From the IMG/VR virus record IMGVR_UViG_3300017917_000952, positions 124,001 through 188,000 of that record: a DNA stretch of 64,000 bases; one strand, written 5' to 3'. The notes beneath the pieces were generated by a model. The model was given only the letters and a program-made list of their open reading frames with translations, made no database searches and was not told where the DNA came from. Positions 3,159 through 10,632 of this stretch are shown one piece after another (within the stretch, counting starts at the first letter, position 1; every line of letters begins with the position of its first letter). The position numbers were made by a program, and so were the translations under genes.

Positions 3159-4745
3159 ATGAATCTTTCCTCTTTATTATCGAAAATTGACTCTCTTGAG
3201 AATAGCCCAAGACAAAGTATCTTTGAGAGTATTGGCCAAGGAGATCAATATTTCCGTACATGGGAACGAGACATACATCCTGTACTATGTGAAGTAGCAA
3301 TGAGCCCTGAACAAATTCAACAACTATTCAAAGGAGTTGAAGCAGGTGCAGGAAGAAGTACCTTAGGTAAAGGCCTTGATGCAGTTAAAGGCGCTACAGA
3401 TAAAGTTAGCGATGCATGGTTTAACAAATTCGGTGGAATGCTACAGAACAGTACACCAGTACAGGCTTTCGATCAGAAATATGAAGATATTAAGAGCAAG
3501 ATTGCTGCAAAGCATCCAGACCTTGCAGCAAAATTAGCCAAGTACGGTGAATTTGCTAAAGAACATCCAAACTGGCACAAATTTCTATTAGCGATTGCAG
3601 GATCAGTTGCTTCTGCTGTTGGCGTTGCTGCCGCAGGAGGTGTTGGAGCAGGTGCTCTAGCAATAGGTACAGGTGTTGGTGTTGCAACAGGTATTCTTAA
3701 TATTGCAGATAGATTATTACAAGGACAAAAGGCGTCAACTGCTATCGGTCGTGGAGCAACTACTGGAGCAATAGCAGGCGTTACTGCCGGTGTACTTTCA
3801 AAAGTTGGATCATGGCTAGGCTCCATGAGAGAAAAATCTATTCCGTTCGGCCCAGAGGATGCGGGCCTAGAAAGAATCAGTTGGGATGCTAAAAAGACAT
3901 TAACTGCTCCGGGCATGGAGTGGACACAACGAACACAAGGATTCCAAGCATTAGTTAAAGCAGAAGACGCTTCCGCAATTCGTGCAGCAATGAATCAAAT
4001 CAGTACCAATCCAGGAACTGGTGGTTTTGAAGAGTTACAACGACTAGGAAGAATGGTTGCTAGTAAGGATTACATAGCCAACATGCAGACTGCGGTTGAC
4101 GGAGCATTTGCCGCAGCAAAGAATAACGACAGTTTATTGCAATTCATCAATACTGTTACTCAAGGAGCAGCAGCCGCTTCCGGTGGCGCCGCTAGTGCTG
4201 CGACAGCGTCTGGTGGTCAACAGCCTAAGCCGACAGCGGAGTCATTAAGCAGAACACAGGTTAACGAACTATTTGGCATTACTGGAAATAAAGTTGATGC
4301 TGCCAAATTACAAAAGGCTTGGGTAAAAGCAGGTAGTCCTACTGACAGCGAAGAAATTGCAAAAATACTTCAAGCGGCAGGAGTCGAATCTTCAGTAATT
4401 TCGAAAGCATTTACTGATATGTCGTTACCAGAACCTACAAGTACAGCAAGTGTAGCACCTGCTAAAGACAGTGCAGCCGCACCTGACAATGCAGCGCCCG
4501 TAGATGCTACTGCACCTACAGATACTAAACCTGCAACTGCTGAGCCGGCCGCTACTGCACCTGCTGCTCAACAAAGCAAAGTTGGTGTTGGACAAATTAA
4601 TAAAATTATCCCAACACTCCGTCTTCGAGATTTGAAGAGTGTACAAAAGACAGTAGATGCGGCTCTTGCTAAACGTACAACATCTACACAACCTACTAAC
4701 GAAAGTGTAGTGTTTTACAGCAAGTTTTTAGATAAAGAAATTTAA
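3159..4745 (+). CDS. Ala/Gly-rich hypothetical protein, probable internal/ejected virion protein (528 aa)
   Basis: Late promoter upstream; hydrophobic Gly/Ala segment (AVGVAAAGGVGAGALAIG); C-terminal domain shared with next ORF. Confidence 0.6.
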   Translation: MNLSSLLSKIDSLENSPRQSIFESIGQGDQYFRTWERDIHPVLCEVAMSPEQIQQLFKGVEAGAGRSTLGKGLDAVKGATDKVSDAWFNKFGGMLQNSTPVQAFDQKYEDIKSKIAAKHPDLAAKLAKYGEFAKEHPNWHKFLLAIAGSVASAVGVAAAGGVGAGALAIGTGVGVATGILNIADRLLQGQKASTAIGRGATTGAIAGVTAGVLSKVGSWLGSMREKSIPFGPEDAGLERISWDAKKTLTAPGMEWTQRTQGFQALVKAEDASAIRAAMNQISTNPGTGGFEELQRLGRMVASKDYIANMQTAVDGAFAAAKNNDSLLQFINTVTQGAAAASGGAASAATASGGQQPKPTAESLSRTQVNELFGITGNKVDAAKLQKAWVKAGSPTDSEEIAKILQAAGVESSVISKAFTDMSLPEPTSTASVAPAKDSAAAPDNAAPVDATAPTDTKPATAEPAATAPAAQQSKVGVGQINKIIPTLRLRDLKSVQKTVDAALAKRTTSTQPTNESVVFYSKFLDKEI

Positions 4746-4754
4746 GGAACAGAT

Positions 4755-5462
4755 ATGAAAATTAATGAACTGTTAGTTGAGAACGAACAACTTGACGAAC
4801 TAAATCTAAAAGGTCTTGGAACTGGCCTTGGTAAAGCAATCGGCGGCGCTGCTGGTGGAGTAGTTCAAGGAGCAAAAAATATCTGGTCCGGAATGAAACA
4901 AGGATATGCAGGCGCTCAACAAGCAATGGCTCCGGATGATGCAGGTACTACACCCGCAGCAACTAGCGGTACAGCACCTGCTGCAACTGCTCCTGCGGCT
5001 GCTCCGGCAGATACAACTGGTGGTTCTGGTGAAGTAGCAGCATCTAACATACTTGCAAGGGCAAAACAAGGTACAACACAAGATCCTAATGCTGCTCCTG
5101 CTGCGGCGCCTGCAACACCAGCACCTGCGGCTACTCAAGCACCTGCGGCTACTCAAGCAGGGCAAGAACCTGCTGCTGCTCCTGCTGCTGATCAGCAGAG
5201 CAAAGTTGGTGTTGGACAGATTAACAAATTAATTCCTACACTAAGAACAAGAGATCTTCAAAGTGTTAAGAAAACTGTAGATGCTACTATTGCTAAGAAA
5301 ACTGCTGCTAAACCTGCTGCACCTGCGGCCGCACCGGCAGCAAGTCCAAGCCAGGCTGAGATTGATGCCGACCGTGCAAGACTAATGGGTCCAGACAATG
5401 GTGGCGCAAACGAAAGTAAAGTAGTTAAGTTTAATAGTAAGTTCTTAGGAATGGATATTTAA
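4755..5462 (+). CDS. Ala/Pro/Thr-rich hypothetical protein, probable internal virion protein (235 aa)
   Basis: N-terminus MKINELLVE resembles head-protease-processed leaders; shares QQSKVGVGQINK...RDL domain and SKFL tail with upstream ORF. Confidence 0.6.
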   Translation: MKINELLVENEQLDELNLKGLGTGLGKAIGGAAGGVVQGAKNIWSGMKQGYAGAQQAMAPDDAGTTPAATSGTAPAATAPAAAPADTTGGSGEVAASNILARAKQGTTQDPNAAPAAAPATPAPAATQAPAATQAGQEPAAAPAADQQSKVGVGQINKLIPTLRTRDLQSVKKTVDATIAKKTAAKPAAPAAAPAASPSQAEIDADRARLMGPDNGGANESKVVKFNSKFLGMDI

Positions 5463-5683
5463 AAGAACGGTTGTCCGGTTTCTTTTGTAATCTCTAAATT
5501 ATTTTGGATAATTTTTCCTATAAGGACTCTATCTTCGTACGATAGAAGGTAGCCTTCGGCAATGCTAGTACCGCGCATGTGCCAACAAATTCTAAAAATT
5601 TCGTCTTTTAAGGCTTTTGACTCTTCTTCGTATTCTTTTACAACCTTGTCAATTTCTTCAAGGCTGAGAGACAAAAGCCTCAT
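5459..5683 (-). CDS. Small tail/baseplate assembly chaperone-like protein (74 aa), possible frameshift extension of upstream ORF
   Basis: ATGA overlap with 5680..6528; lies in the -1 frame immediately after a U UUU UUC heptamer. Confidence 0.6.
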   Translation of the reverse strand: MRLLSLSLEEIDKVVKEYEEESKALKDEIFRICWHMRGTSIAEGYLLSYEDRVLIGKIIQNNLEITKETGQPFF

Positions 5684-6528
5684 ACGAAAAAATTTGATGG
5701 ATCAAACGTAACTGGTACTTCGATTGTATCGCCTAAGAATCCTTTATCCCGCATTTCGTCAGTAACTGCAACTCTCATAGGCTTGACATTGTTGTTTTCG
5801 CGCAGTGCGGTTAGATGATCTTCGATTTTTTTGTAAATTTCTTTATCGATATTATCAACAAATTCTTTGATATGTGCTGGATCGCTAGTGCTACCTACCG
5901 CACTTTCGACTCTATCTATACTATCGATAATAGTACCTAAAGTTACCTGTGTCATCTTATTGAAACTATCTTTGAACAATTCAATCTTTTGTTCATCGGT
6001 CATTGTTTTATCATTTACAACTTCCATAATTTTTTGTGTTTCAAATGCCTGTATTGCTGCATGAGCAATGTTCTTATATGTGAGTGGCTTAACAAATACA
6101 GTTAACTCGTCATTAATAGGAACAACCGGATCCCATCTAATTTGATGTTGAAGACCGTCCATAATAAGTCGCAGGTCGACTTGATATTCAAGTTCTAGAT
6201 CTCCAATTTTTACAGGAGTAGTCATCATTTCGCCATATGTTGCTAGGCGAATAGCAATAAGAATAATATCTAAATCAATGTTTGGGCAAGCCCACGCATT
6301 TTTAATATTTGGAATACAGTGTTGAATTACATCGACAACGGCCTGCCCATTCATTAATGCATCAGGAACTTTAAGTGCAAGTTCATCCTTAGCAGTCATA
6401 GAATAAACAGCATATTCTCCTGTTTCAGATATTTCTAAACTGCCTTCCGGCCAAAATTCTCCGTTACTGGGCAACCTAATATAGATTTTAGGCTGTCTCA
6501 TATACATGGCTAATGGGTTACTGGTCAT
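5680..6528 (-). CDS. Baseplate hub assembly / tail assembly chaperone (T4 gp26/gp51-like)
   Basis: N-terminal YIRLPSNGEF...VYSMTAKDEL...DLDIILIAIRLATYG pattern typical of gp26-like proteins; divergent from the tape-measure-like gene. Confidence 0.7.
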   Translation of the reverse strand: MTSNPLAMYMRQPKIYIRLPSNGEFWPEGSLEISETGEYAVYSMTAKDELALKVPDALMNGQAVVDVIQHCIPNIKNAWACPNIDLDIILIAIRLATYGEMMTTPVKIGDLELEYQVDLRLIMDGLQHQIRWDPVVPINDELTVFVKPLTYKNIAHAAIQAFETQKIMEVVNDKTMTDEQKIELFKDSFNKMTQVTLGTIIDSIDRVESAVGSTSDPAHIKEFVDNIDKEIYKKIEDHLTALRENNNVKPMRVAVTDEMRDKGFLGDTIEVPVTFDPSNFFV

Positions 6529-6605: not shown

Positions 6606-8894
6606 ATGGCAGACGAAGTAATTAGTGGTGGTCAACAGATAGCATCTGAAGCAACTTTACAGGCATTATTAAATGCCGTCAGTGGGTCGAGCGGTGCCAG
6701 CGCCGCCATGCAGGTACAAAAACTAGCCAATGCCTCCGGGGTAGCAGGTAAACAAGTTCAAGACTTTGGTGCAAACCTTGGAAATATTGTAGGTGCTGCA
6801 CAAAACTTAACTGGCGCATTTATACAGGGCACTGCAACATCTAGTCAGATGTTCGGTGCAATGGGCTCATTACCTGGCCCTATTGGATTAGTGTTCAAAG
6901 GTCTAAGTGCCCTTGCAGGATTCCAAGAACAGGCTATGGAATCTTATCGAACAATGTCGGGCGCCGGCGTTAGTTTTAGCGGTAGCCTATCCGATATGCG
7001 TGTAGCCGCTGCCCAAACTCACATGACGTTGCAACAGTTTGCGAACTTCATGAAAGTAAACGGAGAATCTCTTGCACGTCTAGGTGGCTCAACAAATGAC
7101 GGTGCAAAAGCATTTAGAATGTTAAGTGCAGAACTAATGTCAAGCCCTGCAGGTGTTAATTTAAAAGCATTGGGTTATACAACCGAAGAAGTTAACCAAG
7201 GCATGATGGATTATATCCAAATGACCGGCGGTAGAAGTCAAGAAGAGTTAAAAAATTCTAAGGCTTTACTTGCAAGTTCAACAGAGTACTTAACACAGTT
7301 AGACGGTCTTTCACAGTTAACGGGTAAATCGAGACAAGAACAAGAAAAGGCCTTAAAAGAAGCACAGCAAAATGCCGCGATTCAGCAGAAATTAGCAGGC
7401 ATGGATGAGAATCAAAAAGCGGCATACACTCGAGGCCTTGCTGAAATGAATGCTAAATTTGGCAAAGCAGGCGTAGAACTGTATCAAGCTCAGATGTTAG
7501 GTATTCCTCCACAAACAGAAGCCGCCCGTAACTTAGCAGCACTATCGCCTGAAGTTGCAAGAGCAAGTAAGGGAATGGCTGATGTAGCAAATCGAGGCGG
7601 CACGGCTGCTGAAACATTAAGATACTCTGCACAGGCTACACAGGGAGCAGTTGAAGCAAGTAAGAAATTCGGCGACGGTGTTAAGGCTGCGATGAGTTTT
7701 AGAACAGACGGTGCAGCACAAGCAATCAATTCTCTAGGTATGGCAGCGGTGCAGGCCGAAAAACAAGGTCGACAAACAACTGCTCAAGAATTAGAACTTC
7801 GCGAAAAAATTGCTAGAGAACAAAAGGCTCGTCAAGAATCGGAAGCAAAACAATTAATGGTTGCTGAACAGAACATTAAGTCGTTTAGTGTTGCCCTGTT
7901 AAGTTTTGTACAACCATTTGTAGCATTCTTAACTCCGATTATTGAAAAATTAAGTTTCTTAGCACCAGTTATCGGAACTGTTGCAGCGGCACTGGTAGCA
8001 TTGAAGGTAGCGGCAATGACCGTTGCTTCCGTAAGAACACTAAAGTCAACCGTCGGCGGCATGGTGGACACTATTACTGGTCGTGGAGGTCCTGGCGCAA
8101 ATGTTCCTAAAGGTCCAGTACCTACGCCTCCAGTACCATCTGCACCTGGCGGCGGCGCCGCAGGTAGCGGATTTGTTGGGTTTATTAAATCATTAGGTAG
8201 AGGTCTAGCAAGTCTAGCACCTATTGCTGTGCCTATGATTATTGGTGCCAGTGCTGTTGCAGCAACTATAGCAATAGTAGGCGTTGGCGTGGCGGCAGCA
8301 ATCGCAGTTATTGGAGTAAGTTTACCTATATTTGCAAAAGGCCTTGGTGAAATATCAAAAATTGACGGATTGAATCTAGCAAAGGTAGCACTAGGTATTG
8401 CGGCATTGGGCCCTGCTCTTGTGTTATTCACTGGGGGCAGTATTATTGCAGGACTCGGTGCAGTAGGTACAAAAATTACTAATTTCTTCTCAGGTGGTGG
8501 ACCGATTGCACAGATCAAAGAAGCCATTACTGAATTAAGTCCTTTATTACCTCAAATGCAAGGCTTAGGCCCTGCACTAAACAACTACGCTAGCGGTATT
8601 GTAGCGTTTGGTAAAGCAGTTAGTACTGTTGATATTGCTAAAGCAGAACGACTAAAAGAAGTAATGAAAGGACCAGGAGTTCTAGAAGGTATCGGTTCAG
8701 CAATCAAGGATGTTGGTGCTGCAACTGCGAAACTCGTTTCTGGACAGAGCGGAGGGCAAGAAAAAAGCAATTCAGAGCTTGCAGCCTTAAATAATGTTAT
8801 GAAAGAATTAGTAAAGTATTCTCGTGAAATTTCCGATTATACTAAACAAACGGTTGAAGCAACCAAAAAATTAAACGGAAATCACTTCGGATAA
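6606..8894 (+). CDS. Tape-measure-like protein (762 aa)
   Basis: Long Ala/Gly/Gln-rich helical sequence with hydrophobic amphipathic C-terminal segments; adjacent to chaperone pair; no catalytic motif. Confidence 0.65.
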   Translation: MADEVISGGQQIASEATLQALLNAVSGSSGASAAMQVQKLANASGVAGKQVQDFGANLGNIVGAAQNLTGAFIQGTATSSQMFGAMGSLPGPIGLVFKGLSALAGFQEQAMESYRTMSGAGVSFSGSLSDMRVAAAQTHMTLQQFANFMKVNGESLARLGGSTNDGAKAFRMLSAELMSSPAGVNLKALGYTTEEVNQGMMDYIQMTGGRSQEELKNSKALLASSTEYLTQLDGLSQLTGKSRQEQEKALKEAQQNAAIQQKLAGMDENQKAAYTRGLAEMNAKFGKAGVELYQAQMLGIPPQTEAARNLAALSPEVARASKGMADVANRGGTAAETLRYSAQATQGAVEASKKFGDGVKAAMSFRTDGAAQAINSLGMAAVQAEKQGRQTTAQELELREKIAREQKARQESEAKQLMVAEQNIKSFSVALLSFVQPFVAFLTPIIEKLSFLAPVIGTVAAALVALKVAAMTVASVRTLKSTVGGMVDTITGRGGPGANVPKGPVPTPPVPSAPGGGAAGSGFVGFIKSLGRGLASLAPIAVPMIIGASAVAATIAIVGVGVAAAIAVIGVSLPIFAKGLGEISKIDGLNLAKVALGIAALGPALVLFTGGSIIAGLGAVGTKITNFFSGGGPIAQIKEAITELSPLLPQMQGLGPALNNYASGIVAFGKAVSTVDIAKAERLKEVMKGPGVLEGIGSAIKDVGAATAKLVSGQSGGQEKSNSELAALNNVMKELVKYSREISDYTKQTVEATKKLNGNHFG

Positions 8895-8898
8895 GATT

Positions 8899-10632
8899 AT
8901 GTCTTGGAAAAAATATTTTACACCCGTTGACACAAGTGGTAAACTTAGCCCTATTAGCGGTGCTATGAATATGGGGTCGGGTGCAAATCCTAGCCGTTCA
9001 AACTATTCTAGTTACTTACCCGACATTTACGCTGGACATCCTAACCGTCTAGAGCGTTATGGTCAATATGATACTATGGATACAGACAGCGAAGTTAACG
9101 CTGCCTTTGATATTCTTGCAGAATTCTGCACACAGGCCAATGAAGAAAACGGAACCCCGTTCCAAATTTTCTTCAAAGATCAAGCAACACAAACTGAAAT
9201 CAAGATCATTAAGAAGTATCTACAACAATGGACACGAATGAACAAGTTTCAAATTCGTATGTTCAAAATTGTTCGGAATGCATTTAAGTATGGTGACAGT
9301 TTCTTTGTCCGAGATCCGGAAACACAGAAGTGGTTGTATATTGATCCAGCAAAAGTAGATAAAATTATTGTTAATGAAAGTGAAGGCAAAAAGCCTGAAC
9401 AGTATTTCATTAGAGATTTTAATCCTAACTTAGAAGCACTGGCAACAACTGCGATTCAGCCAACAAACGTACATGGCGGCGGAAGCCAGTTCGGCGGAGC
9501 ATATAACTCTGGTCTAGGCGGCGCAGGTGGTAGCAGGGGTATGACTGGTAGTTATCCTACTGGCGCATCTGGTACAAGATTCAGTGAAAATCAAAATCAA
9601 TATGCTATTGATGCACGACATGTCATTCATATTAGCATGAGCGAAGGTTTAGACAACAATTTCCCATTTGGAAATAGTCTAATGGAAAGTATCTTTAAAG
9701 TTTTTAAACAAAAAGAACTATTAGAAGATGCTATCTTAATCTATAGAATACAACGTGCTCCTGAGCGCAGAGTATTTTATATTGACGTCGGTAATATGCC
9801 AAGCCACTTGGCTATGAGTTTTGTTGAGCGTGTAAAAAACGAAGTTAATCAACGCAGAATTCCTAGCGTAACAGGTGGAGCCCAGAGCGTCGTAGATGCT
9901 GCATATAACCCATTAAGCATTAACGAAGATTATTTCTTCCCACAAACCGCAGAAGGTCGAGGTAGTAAGGTTGAAATTCTGCAAGGCGGACAAAATCTAG
10001 GAGAGATCGATGATCTTAGATATTTTACTAATAAGTTGTTTCGTGCTTTACGCATACCTAGCAGTTATCTACCTACCGGCTCTGACGACGGAGGATCTAA
10101 CTTCAATGATGGTAGAGTTGGAACAGCCTACATTCAAGAACTTAGATTCAACAAATACTGCGAACGACTACAAAGTCTCCTAAACGAACCGTTCGATACT
10201 GAATTTAAGATGTATCTACATACCCAAGGTATTAATGTAGATAACAATGTTTTTGAAATTAAATTCAATCCTCCGCAAAATTTTGCCGCATATCGACAGG
10301 CAGAAATGGATACTGCTCGTGTTAATACATTTAATACCATGGTTGCAGTCCCGTTTGTAAGCAAGAGATTTGCTATGAAGCGTTTCTTAGGTATGACTAC
10401 AGAAGAAGTTGCAGAAAACGAACGTCTATGGCGCGAAGAAAACATTGATGAAGATCAATATCTAAGCGCAAGTAGTGAACTTCGAGGTGCTGGAATCACA
10501 GCAAACGGTATAGCATCTGACACATCAACGCTAAGTGGTGCAGCAACACCACCGCCCGAAGCAGTAGAAACACCTGCAGAAGGCGGAGCAGCCGCTCCTG
10601 CGGCCGGCGCAACACCACCGCCAGCGGCATAA
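8899..10632 (+). CDS. gp20: Portal vertex protein
   Basis: LLEDAILIYRIQRAPERRVFYIDVGNMP...YFFPQTAEGRGSKVEILQGGQNLGEIDDLRYF, hallmark of T4-like portals. Confidence 0.95.
   Translation: MSWKKYFTPVDTSGKLSPISGAMNMGSGANPSRSNYSSYLPDIYAGHPNRLERYGQYDTMDTDSEVNAAFDILAEFCTQANEENGTPFQIFFKDQATQTEIKIIKKYLQQWTRMNKFQIRMFKIVRNAFKYGDSFFVRDPETQKWLYIDPAKVDKIIVNESEGKKPEQYFIRDFNPNLEALATTAIQPTNVHGGGSQFGGAYNSGLGGAGGSRGMTGSYPTGASGTRFSENQNQYAIDARHVIHISMSEGLDNNFPFGNSLMESIFKVFKQKELLEDAILIYRIQRAPERRVFYIDVGNMPSHLAMSFVERVKNEVNQRRIPSVTGGAQSVVDAAYNPLSINEDYFFPQTAEGRGSKVEILQGGQNLGEIDDLRYFTNKLFRALRIPSSYLPTGSDDGGSNFNDGRVGTAYIQELRFNKYCERLQSLLNEPFDTEFKMYLHTQGINVDNNVFEIKFNPPQNFAAYRQAEMDTARVNTFNTMVAVPFVSKRFAMKRFLGMTTEEVAENERLWREENIDEDQYLSASSELRGAGITANGIASDTSTLSGAATPPPEAVETPAEGGAAAPAAGATPPPAA

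Follow-up and report, generated by a model that had tools for sequence, protein, structure and literature searches.

The conserved programmed -1 frameshift of long-tailed phages is established for the lambda G/GT-type tail assembly chaperones (Xu, Hendrix and Duda, 2004), where a slippery heptamer near the end of a short ORF makes a short form and a C-terminally extended long form from one start. This strategy is regarded as nearly universal in the tail assembly chaperones of long-tailed phages, T4 being the classic exception. In the contractile-tailed phage P2, a -1 slip on T TTT TTG appears to produce the E and E+E' tail chaperones (Christie et al., 2002). T4 encodes the hub assembly chaperones gp26 and gp51 (PMC3004832, Table 2) as two paralogous genes, and the literature has reached conflicting conclusions on their roles in hub assembly. 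In cyanophages such as S-SSM7, a 'gp26' gene is accompanied by a small 'gp51' gene (T4-like gene clusters 11 and 12), the two being annotated as separate genes.

The window analyzed here is a 64,000-nt stretch of a 206,751-bp IMG/VR virus record (IMGVR_UViG_3300017917_000952), estimated to be 58% complete, from pond and freshwater metagenomes; it carries T4-like portal, prohead protease and gp46-like genes. On its minus strand, a 282-aa ORF (ORF A, 6528..5680, genetic code 11) ends N-F-F-V-stop, with the TGA stop at 5682-5680, and the heptamer T TTT TTC (U UUU UUC) lies at 5692-5686 in X XXY YYZ phase with it, one codon before the stop. The 74-aa ORF B (5683..5459, minus strand) starts at an ATG overlapping this stop as ATGA. 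A slip of -1 at the heptamer would read F-F-R-M-R-L-L and continue for 75 codons plus a stop (5686..5459), joining 6528..5686 to 5686..5462 in a product of 281 + 75 = 356 aa. A second, overlapping heptamer, A AAT TTT (5695-5689), shifts into the same frame, but it is present only where the preceding codons are xxA AAT and is thus not a conserved requirement. The first-pass annotation, which proposed a -1 frameshift fusing the two ORFs, was correct in its observation, and its central claim is strongly supported by comparative evidence. The heptamer itself is not above chance, with 20 copies of TTTTTTC in the window against 22 +/- 4.6 expected; what exceeds chance is its phase, position and conservation. 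Contigs from three other studies (aquaculture, estuary and aquatic metagenomes) cover 5403-5997 with substitutions only, none of them within 5661-5692, and without indels, so the T6 run is not an assembly error.

ORF A belongs to the T4 gp26 family (Pfam PF12322, T4_baseplate; 32.8 bits over residues 44-240 against a cut-off of 24.5) and matches phrog_150, 'baseplate hub'. The four Cys residues (a CxxC...CxxC zinc-ribbon-like pair) present in most members of the family are absent from the window's protein, but this is a common feature of the family and not a defining one. BLASTP of A or B against T4 gp26 was not significant, the link resting on Pfam and profiles. ORF B has no Pfam, PHROG or NCBIfam family, and NCBIfam gave nothing for A or the neighboring genes. 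The AlphaFold model of A is confident (pLDDT 84), but Foldseek and VIA-align searches gave only generic helical matches (Z below 8), and profiles of A, gp51 and B found no relative in the PDB. The divergently transcribed neighbor (6606..8894, plus strand), a 762-aa virion protein, is probably the tape measure (a gp29 analog) and the presumed client of the chaperone pair: 26 of 30 named Atlas feature hits are PhageMin_Tail or TMP_3 families, scoring 0.93-0.94, the protein is Ala/Gly-rich with hydrophobic segments, like gp29, and the RaK2 homolog carries the note 'similar to ... tail tape measure protein'. This remains a lead rather than proof, as BLASTP against T4 gp29 was not significant and no PDB hit was found.

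A DNA-level search of the phage collection with the locus found nothing. However, tblastn with B and with A found the same two-ORF arrangement in distant jumbo phages, namely PA5oct-like phages, Atu_ph07, Phosso, the RaK2/121Q/GAP32/CBB/BF/XaC1 group, SCTP-2 and RAS14. The in-phase heptamer is present in all 16 intact isolate loci (T TTT TTT in RAS14), 3-33 nt before a 0-frame stop whose position varies, and the -1 frame is open for 70-80 codons. All 78 complete IMG/VR loci of the window's clade, at 44-72% identity to A, have the site, as do Aeromonas phage Aeh1 and cyanophage S-SSM7, both with GAT TTT TTC and a -1 ORF, and all 79 complete cyanophage-like IMG/VR loci, where the -1 frame is open for 59-66 codons. 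The stop lies 3 nt after the heptamer in most of the window's clade and in 78 of the 79 cyanophage-like loci (6 nt in one), but 12-33 nt after it in most RaK2-like phages. In total, all 175 homologous loci examined that have an open -1 frame carry the heptamer in the same phase; of 106 non-redundant ones, 105 have TTTTTTC and 1 has TTTTTTT.

Selection at the site acts on nucleotides. Among 74 non-redundant junctions, the codon before the heptamer is AAT, GAT, ACT, AGT, CAT, CGT, GTT or TCT, always ending in T although it encodes N, D, T, S, H, R or V. Elsewhere in the same genes, Phe-Phe is written TTC TTT 26 times, TTT TTT 17 times, and TTT TTC and TTC TTC only 2 times each out of 47, while at the site it is TTT TTC in 105 of 106 non-redundant loci. 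Moreover, the -1 peptide is conserved from its very first codon, an invariant Arg whose C is the last base of the heptamer; the -1 frame is thus under protein-level selection from a base inside the heptamer, upstream of any start codon. Only 12 of the 74 loci have an ATG where the window does, and 27 of 74 have no ATG, GTG or TTG within 12 codons. PA5oct, RaK2 and Aeh1 have no usable start there, and the ORF is not annotated in their records.

The first-pass annotation also pointed to a hairpin 5 nt downstream of the heptamer. The inverted repeat AGGCT (5680-5676) / AGCCT (5665-5661) is present, but a 5-bp stem is unremarkable, and it is a competing alternative to the two hairpins of the minimum-energy fold (5641..5685, minus strand; -15.4 kcal/mol, z -2.8). 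RNAalifold found no consensus structure across 74 relatives or across the 60 of the window's clade, the mean z of individual folds being -0.8; the hairpin is therefore not accepted as a conserved stimulator. Inspection of the window sequence showed no upstream Shine-Dalgarno-like run. Bases +10 to +16 after the heptamer start (TAAGGCT) are unusually conserved, including a 91% preference for AGG over AGA, for which we have no explanation.

Natural in-frame fusions join the two parts at the slip site. A profile of the window-type B domain, searched against 1.84 billion representative proteins, found 476 relatives, most of them 40-98 aa with ragged N-termini, as produced by gene callers when no conserved start exists. 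At least 17 are proteins of 319-351 aa with B at the extreme C-terminus. In one such fusion, P0036, the window's A aligns to residues 4-266 (E 8e-26) and its -1 peptide to residues 266-342 (E 2e-19), so that the two meet at the slip-site Phe-Arg. P0036 is predicted to fold as one body (pLDDT 87, pTM 0.81), with a helix (262-271) running across the junction and three further helices in the B part. On one contig (L197), this in-frame long gene is preceded, in tandem, by a 297-aa PF12322 paralog ending D-F-F-Q-K-K-stop, with FF written TTC TTT; the short paralog P0153 also lacks the four Cys residues.

T4 gp51 is itself a PF12322 protein (residues 1-201, E 3.9e-52) with a 48-aa tail, while gp26 is the domain alone. 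T4 gp26 ends K-E-F-F-E-L-L-stop and is followed by gene 25, with no -1 ORF; JS98, AM101 and KFS-EC are alike. A search for close relatives of T4 gp26 in IMG/VR returned only T-even-like loci. The -1 peptides of Aeh1 (E 2e-5) and S-SSM7 (E 7e-4), and the separate small ORF of the phiW-14-like phage Cygsa01 (E 1e-6), align with gp51 residues 200-249, colinearly and beginning at the slip-site Phe for the -1 peptides. Alignments of small alignments against single T4 sequences with hhalign were weak; in profile-profile comparison, the cyanophage/Aeh1-type B matched gp51 tails with probability 96% (E 4.9e-9), and the window-type B matched the cyanophage type with probability 50% (E 1.6e-4). Direct similarity between the window-type B, a longer variant, and gp51 tails is weak (probability 4%, E 0.01), and this link is therefore probable, not proven. 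As to gene number, the window's record, RaK2, PA5oct, Atu_ph07, S-SSM7 and Aeh1 each have one PF12322 gene and the heptamer, although a second gene cannot be excluded for the window's incomplete genome. T4, JS98, AM101 and KFS-EC have two genes and no heptamer, with FF written TTC TTT, TTT GTC or TTC CTT, and Cygsa01 has one gene without the heptamer plus a separate small ORF with its own ATG.

We suggest, with a probability of about 0.85 in the absence of protein, ribosome-profiling or reporter evidence for any member, that ORF A and ORF B form one recoded gene of the gp26/gp51 family. Most ribosomes would read A to its stop and make the 282-aa short form, the equivalent of gp26, while a fraction would slip back one base with tRNA-Phe occupying UUU and UUC of the heptamer and make a 356-aa long form, the equivalent of gp51, sharing residues 1-281 with the short form and carrying a 75-residue C-terminal domain predicted to be helical. 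The two forms would be made in a fixed ratio and, by analogy with T4 gp26 and gp51 and with lambda G/GT, would act together in assembling the central hub and tape measure.

Separate translation of B by termination-reinitiation at the ATGA overlap, with the heptamer merely encoding a conserved Phe-Phe, is permitted by the window's ATG. Cygsa01, with its free-standing B ORF (TAATG), shows that B can be made as a free protein, and Phe-Phe is conserved even in T4 gp26, which has no B ORF. However, we consider it unlikely as the only source of B, since 62 of 74 non-redundant relatives lack the ATG, conservation of the -1 frame begins upstream of it, the TTT TTC spelling and the preceding third base are fixed although FF is written otherwise elsewhere and in genomes without B, natural fusions exist, and no Shine-Dalgarno-like run lies in the 20 nt before the window's ATG. 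In the window, frameshifting and some initiation at the ATG could coexist.

Transcriptional slippage, with RNA polymerase adding one U in the U6 run, would encode exactly the same N-F-F-R junction, and a homopolymer is present in every locus. Without transcript data this reading is disfavored only by the shortness of the run, which is six bases in 105 of 106 non-redundant loci and never exceeds seven, whereas efficient slippage by bacterial RNA polymerase probably needs runs of about 8-9 or more; it seems improbable. Homopolymer runs are error-prone and in-frame fusions of the same two domains do exist, but a once in-frame gene broken by a sequencing error or a recent mutation is effectively excluded by the recurrence of the arrangement in 175 loci from isolates and metagenomes and by the indel-free contigs from other studies. 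Moreover, the in-frame fusions form a distinct lineage with a different, non-slippery junction and a second, short paralog next to them.

Three genomic arrangements, a frameshift, two genes, or a split gene, thus supply a short form and the B domain. No description of a frameshift in gp26/gp51 genes was found in a literature search that covered few subscription journals, so an earlier description cannot be ruled out. These data place what is probably the same strategy as in other long-tailed phages in the gp26/gp51 family of most T4-superfamily lineages, and offer an explanation for the paralogous genes 26 and 51 of T4. They also correct the annotation of hundreds of genomes; the cyanophage 'gp51' is called from a non-conserved ATG. 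It is somewhat more likely than not that the ancestral hub and tape-measure chaperone of the whole T4 superfamily (cyanophages, Aeh1-like phages, RaK2-, PA5oct- and Atu_ph07-like jumbo phages, and large uncultured freshwater and marine clades) was a single gene recoded on U UUU UUC, T4 genes 26 and 51 being its duplicated descendants. This would supply the G/GT-type frameshift long thought missing from T4-like phages, in a protein family unrelated to gpG, and would assign gp26 and gp51 the roles of G and GT.

Compared with lambda G/GT, to which the first-pass annotation likened the locus, the window shares the slippery heptamer near the end of the short-form ORF and the position next to the probable tape-measure gene, and its T4 homologs are assembly chaperones. 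However, no Pfam, PHROG, NCBIfam or fold link to gpG-like chaperones was found, the short form is large (282 aa), and the gene is transcribed divergently from the probable tape measure rather than lying directly upstream of it, between the tube and tape-measure genes. The P2 system likewise appears to use a U-rich heptamer decoded by tRNA-Phe to make two tail-assembly products. The gp26 and gp51 labels of the first-pass annotation are apt. PF12322 matches ORF A and both T4 proteins, and in both genomes the genes lie at the divergent junction with the hub and tape-measure gene cluster, but T4 encodes the two forms in two genes and the window probably in one recoded gene. The cyanophage 'gp26' and 'gp51' pair has an architecture identical to that of the window, with an in-phase T TTT TTC, a stop 3 nt later and a -1 ORF, its B domain being a shorter variant of about 60 aa against 75.

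A second slippery heptamer, A AAT TTT (5689-5695, minus strand), overlaps the first one, T TTT TTC, and leads into the same -1 frame. It occurs in roughly half of the window's clade, wherever the preceding codons are xxA AAT, and might add to slippage. The only locus with T TTT TTT in place of T TTT TTC is that of Stenotrophomonas phage RAS14; as a result, its first -1 codon encodes Tyr and not the otherwise invariant Arg. In Escherichia phage CMSTMSU (UNVERIFIED_ORG) the hub gene is broken into two ORFs, and the heptamer region reads ...H-F-S-H-N...; this is most likely due to poor assembly quality, and the locus was left out of all the counts. Downstream of the slip site, bases +10 to +16 after the heptamer start (consensus TAAGGCT; window positions 5670-5682, minus strand, and the same offset in 74 relatives) are highly conserved, with Arg written AGG and not AGA in 91% of loci, and Leu written CTN in 80%. 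No conserved hairpin explains this. The conserved stretch looks like a Shine-Dalgarno sequence; however, it lies downstream of the slip site.

Alignment of the gp26-like protein (5680-6528, minus strand) with its homologs revealed that it lacks all four Cys residues (CxxC...CxxC) that are nearly invariant in RaK2-, PA5oct- and Atu_ph07-like homologs and in T4 gp26 and gp51. The whole IMG/VR clade around the window seems to lack them too, as does P0153, the short paralog encoded on contig L197. Several of these genes are missed or mislabeled in the public records. The -1 ORF is not annotated in PA5oct, RaK2, or Aeh1, the hub gene of fHe-Yen9-04 is labeled as a heavy-metal transporting ATPase, and that of WPEC5 is labeled "portal protein".

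The 762-aa Ala/Gly-rich protein with long hydrophobic segments (6606-8894, plus strand) is probably the tape measure. Its homologs in PA5oct were detected in virions by ESI-MS/MS, according to the note in the record. The gene is followed directly by the T4-like portal gene at 8899-10632.

A third arrangement, in which the B domain is made as a free protein, was found in the phiW-14-like Pseudomonas phage Cygsa01: its single PF12322 gene, ending S-I-F-T-stop, has no slippery heptamer and is followed by a 57-aa gp51-tail-like ORF with its own ATG (TAATG). In T4, in addition, an internal in-frame product of gene 26 is annotated (26', 95 aa; 3803-4090, minus strand, of the T4 locus, L098), and T4 may therefore make three PF12322-derived products.
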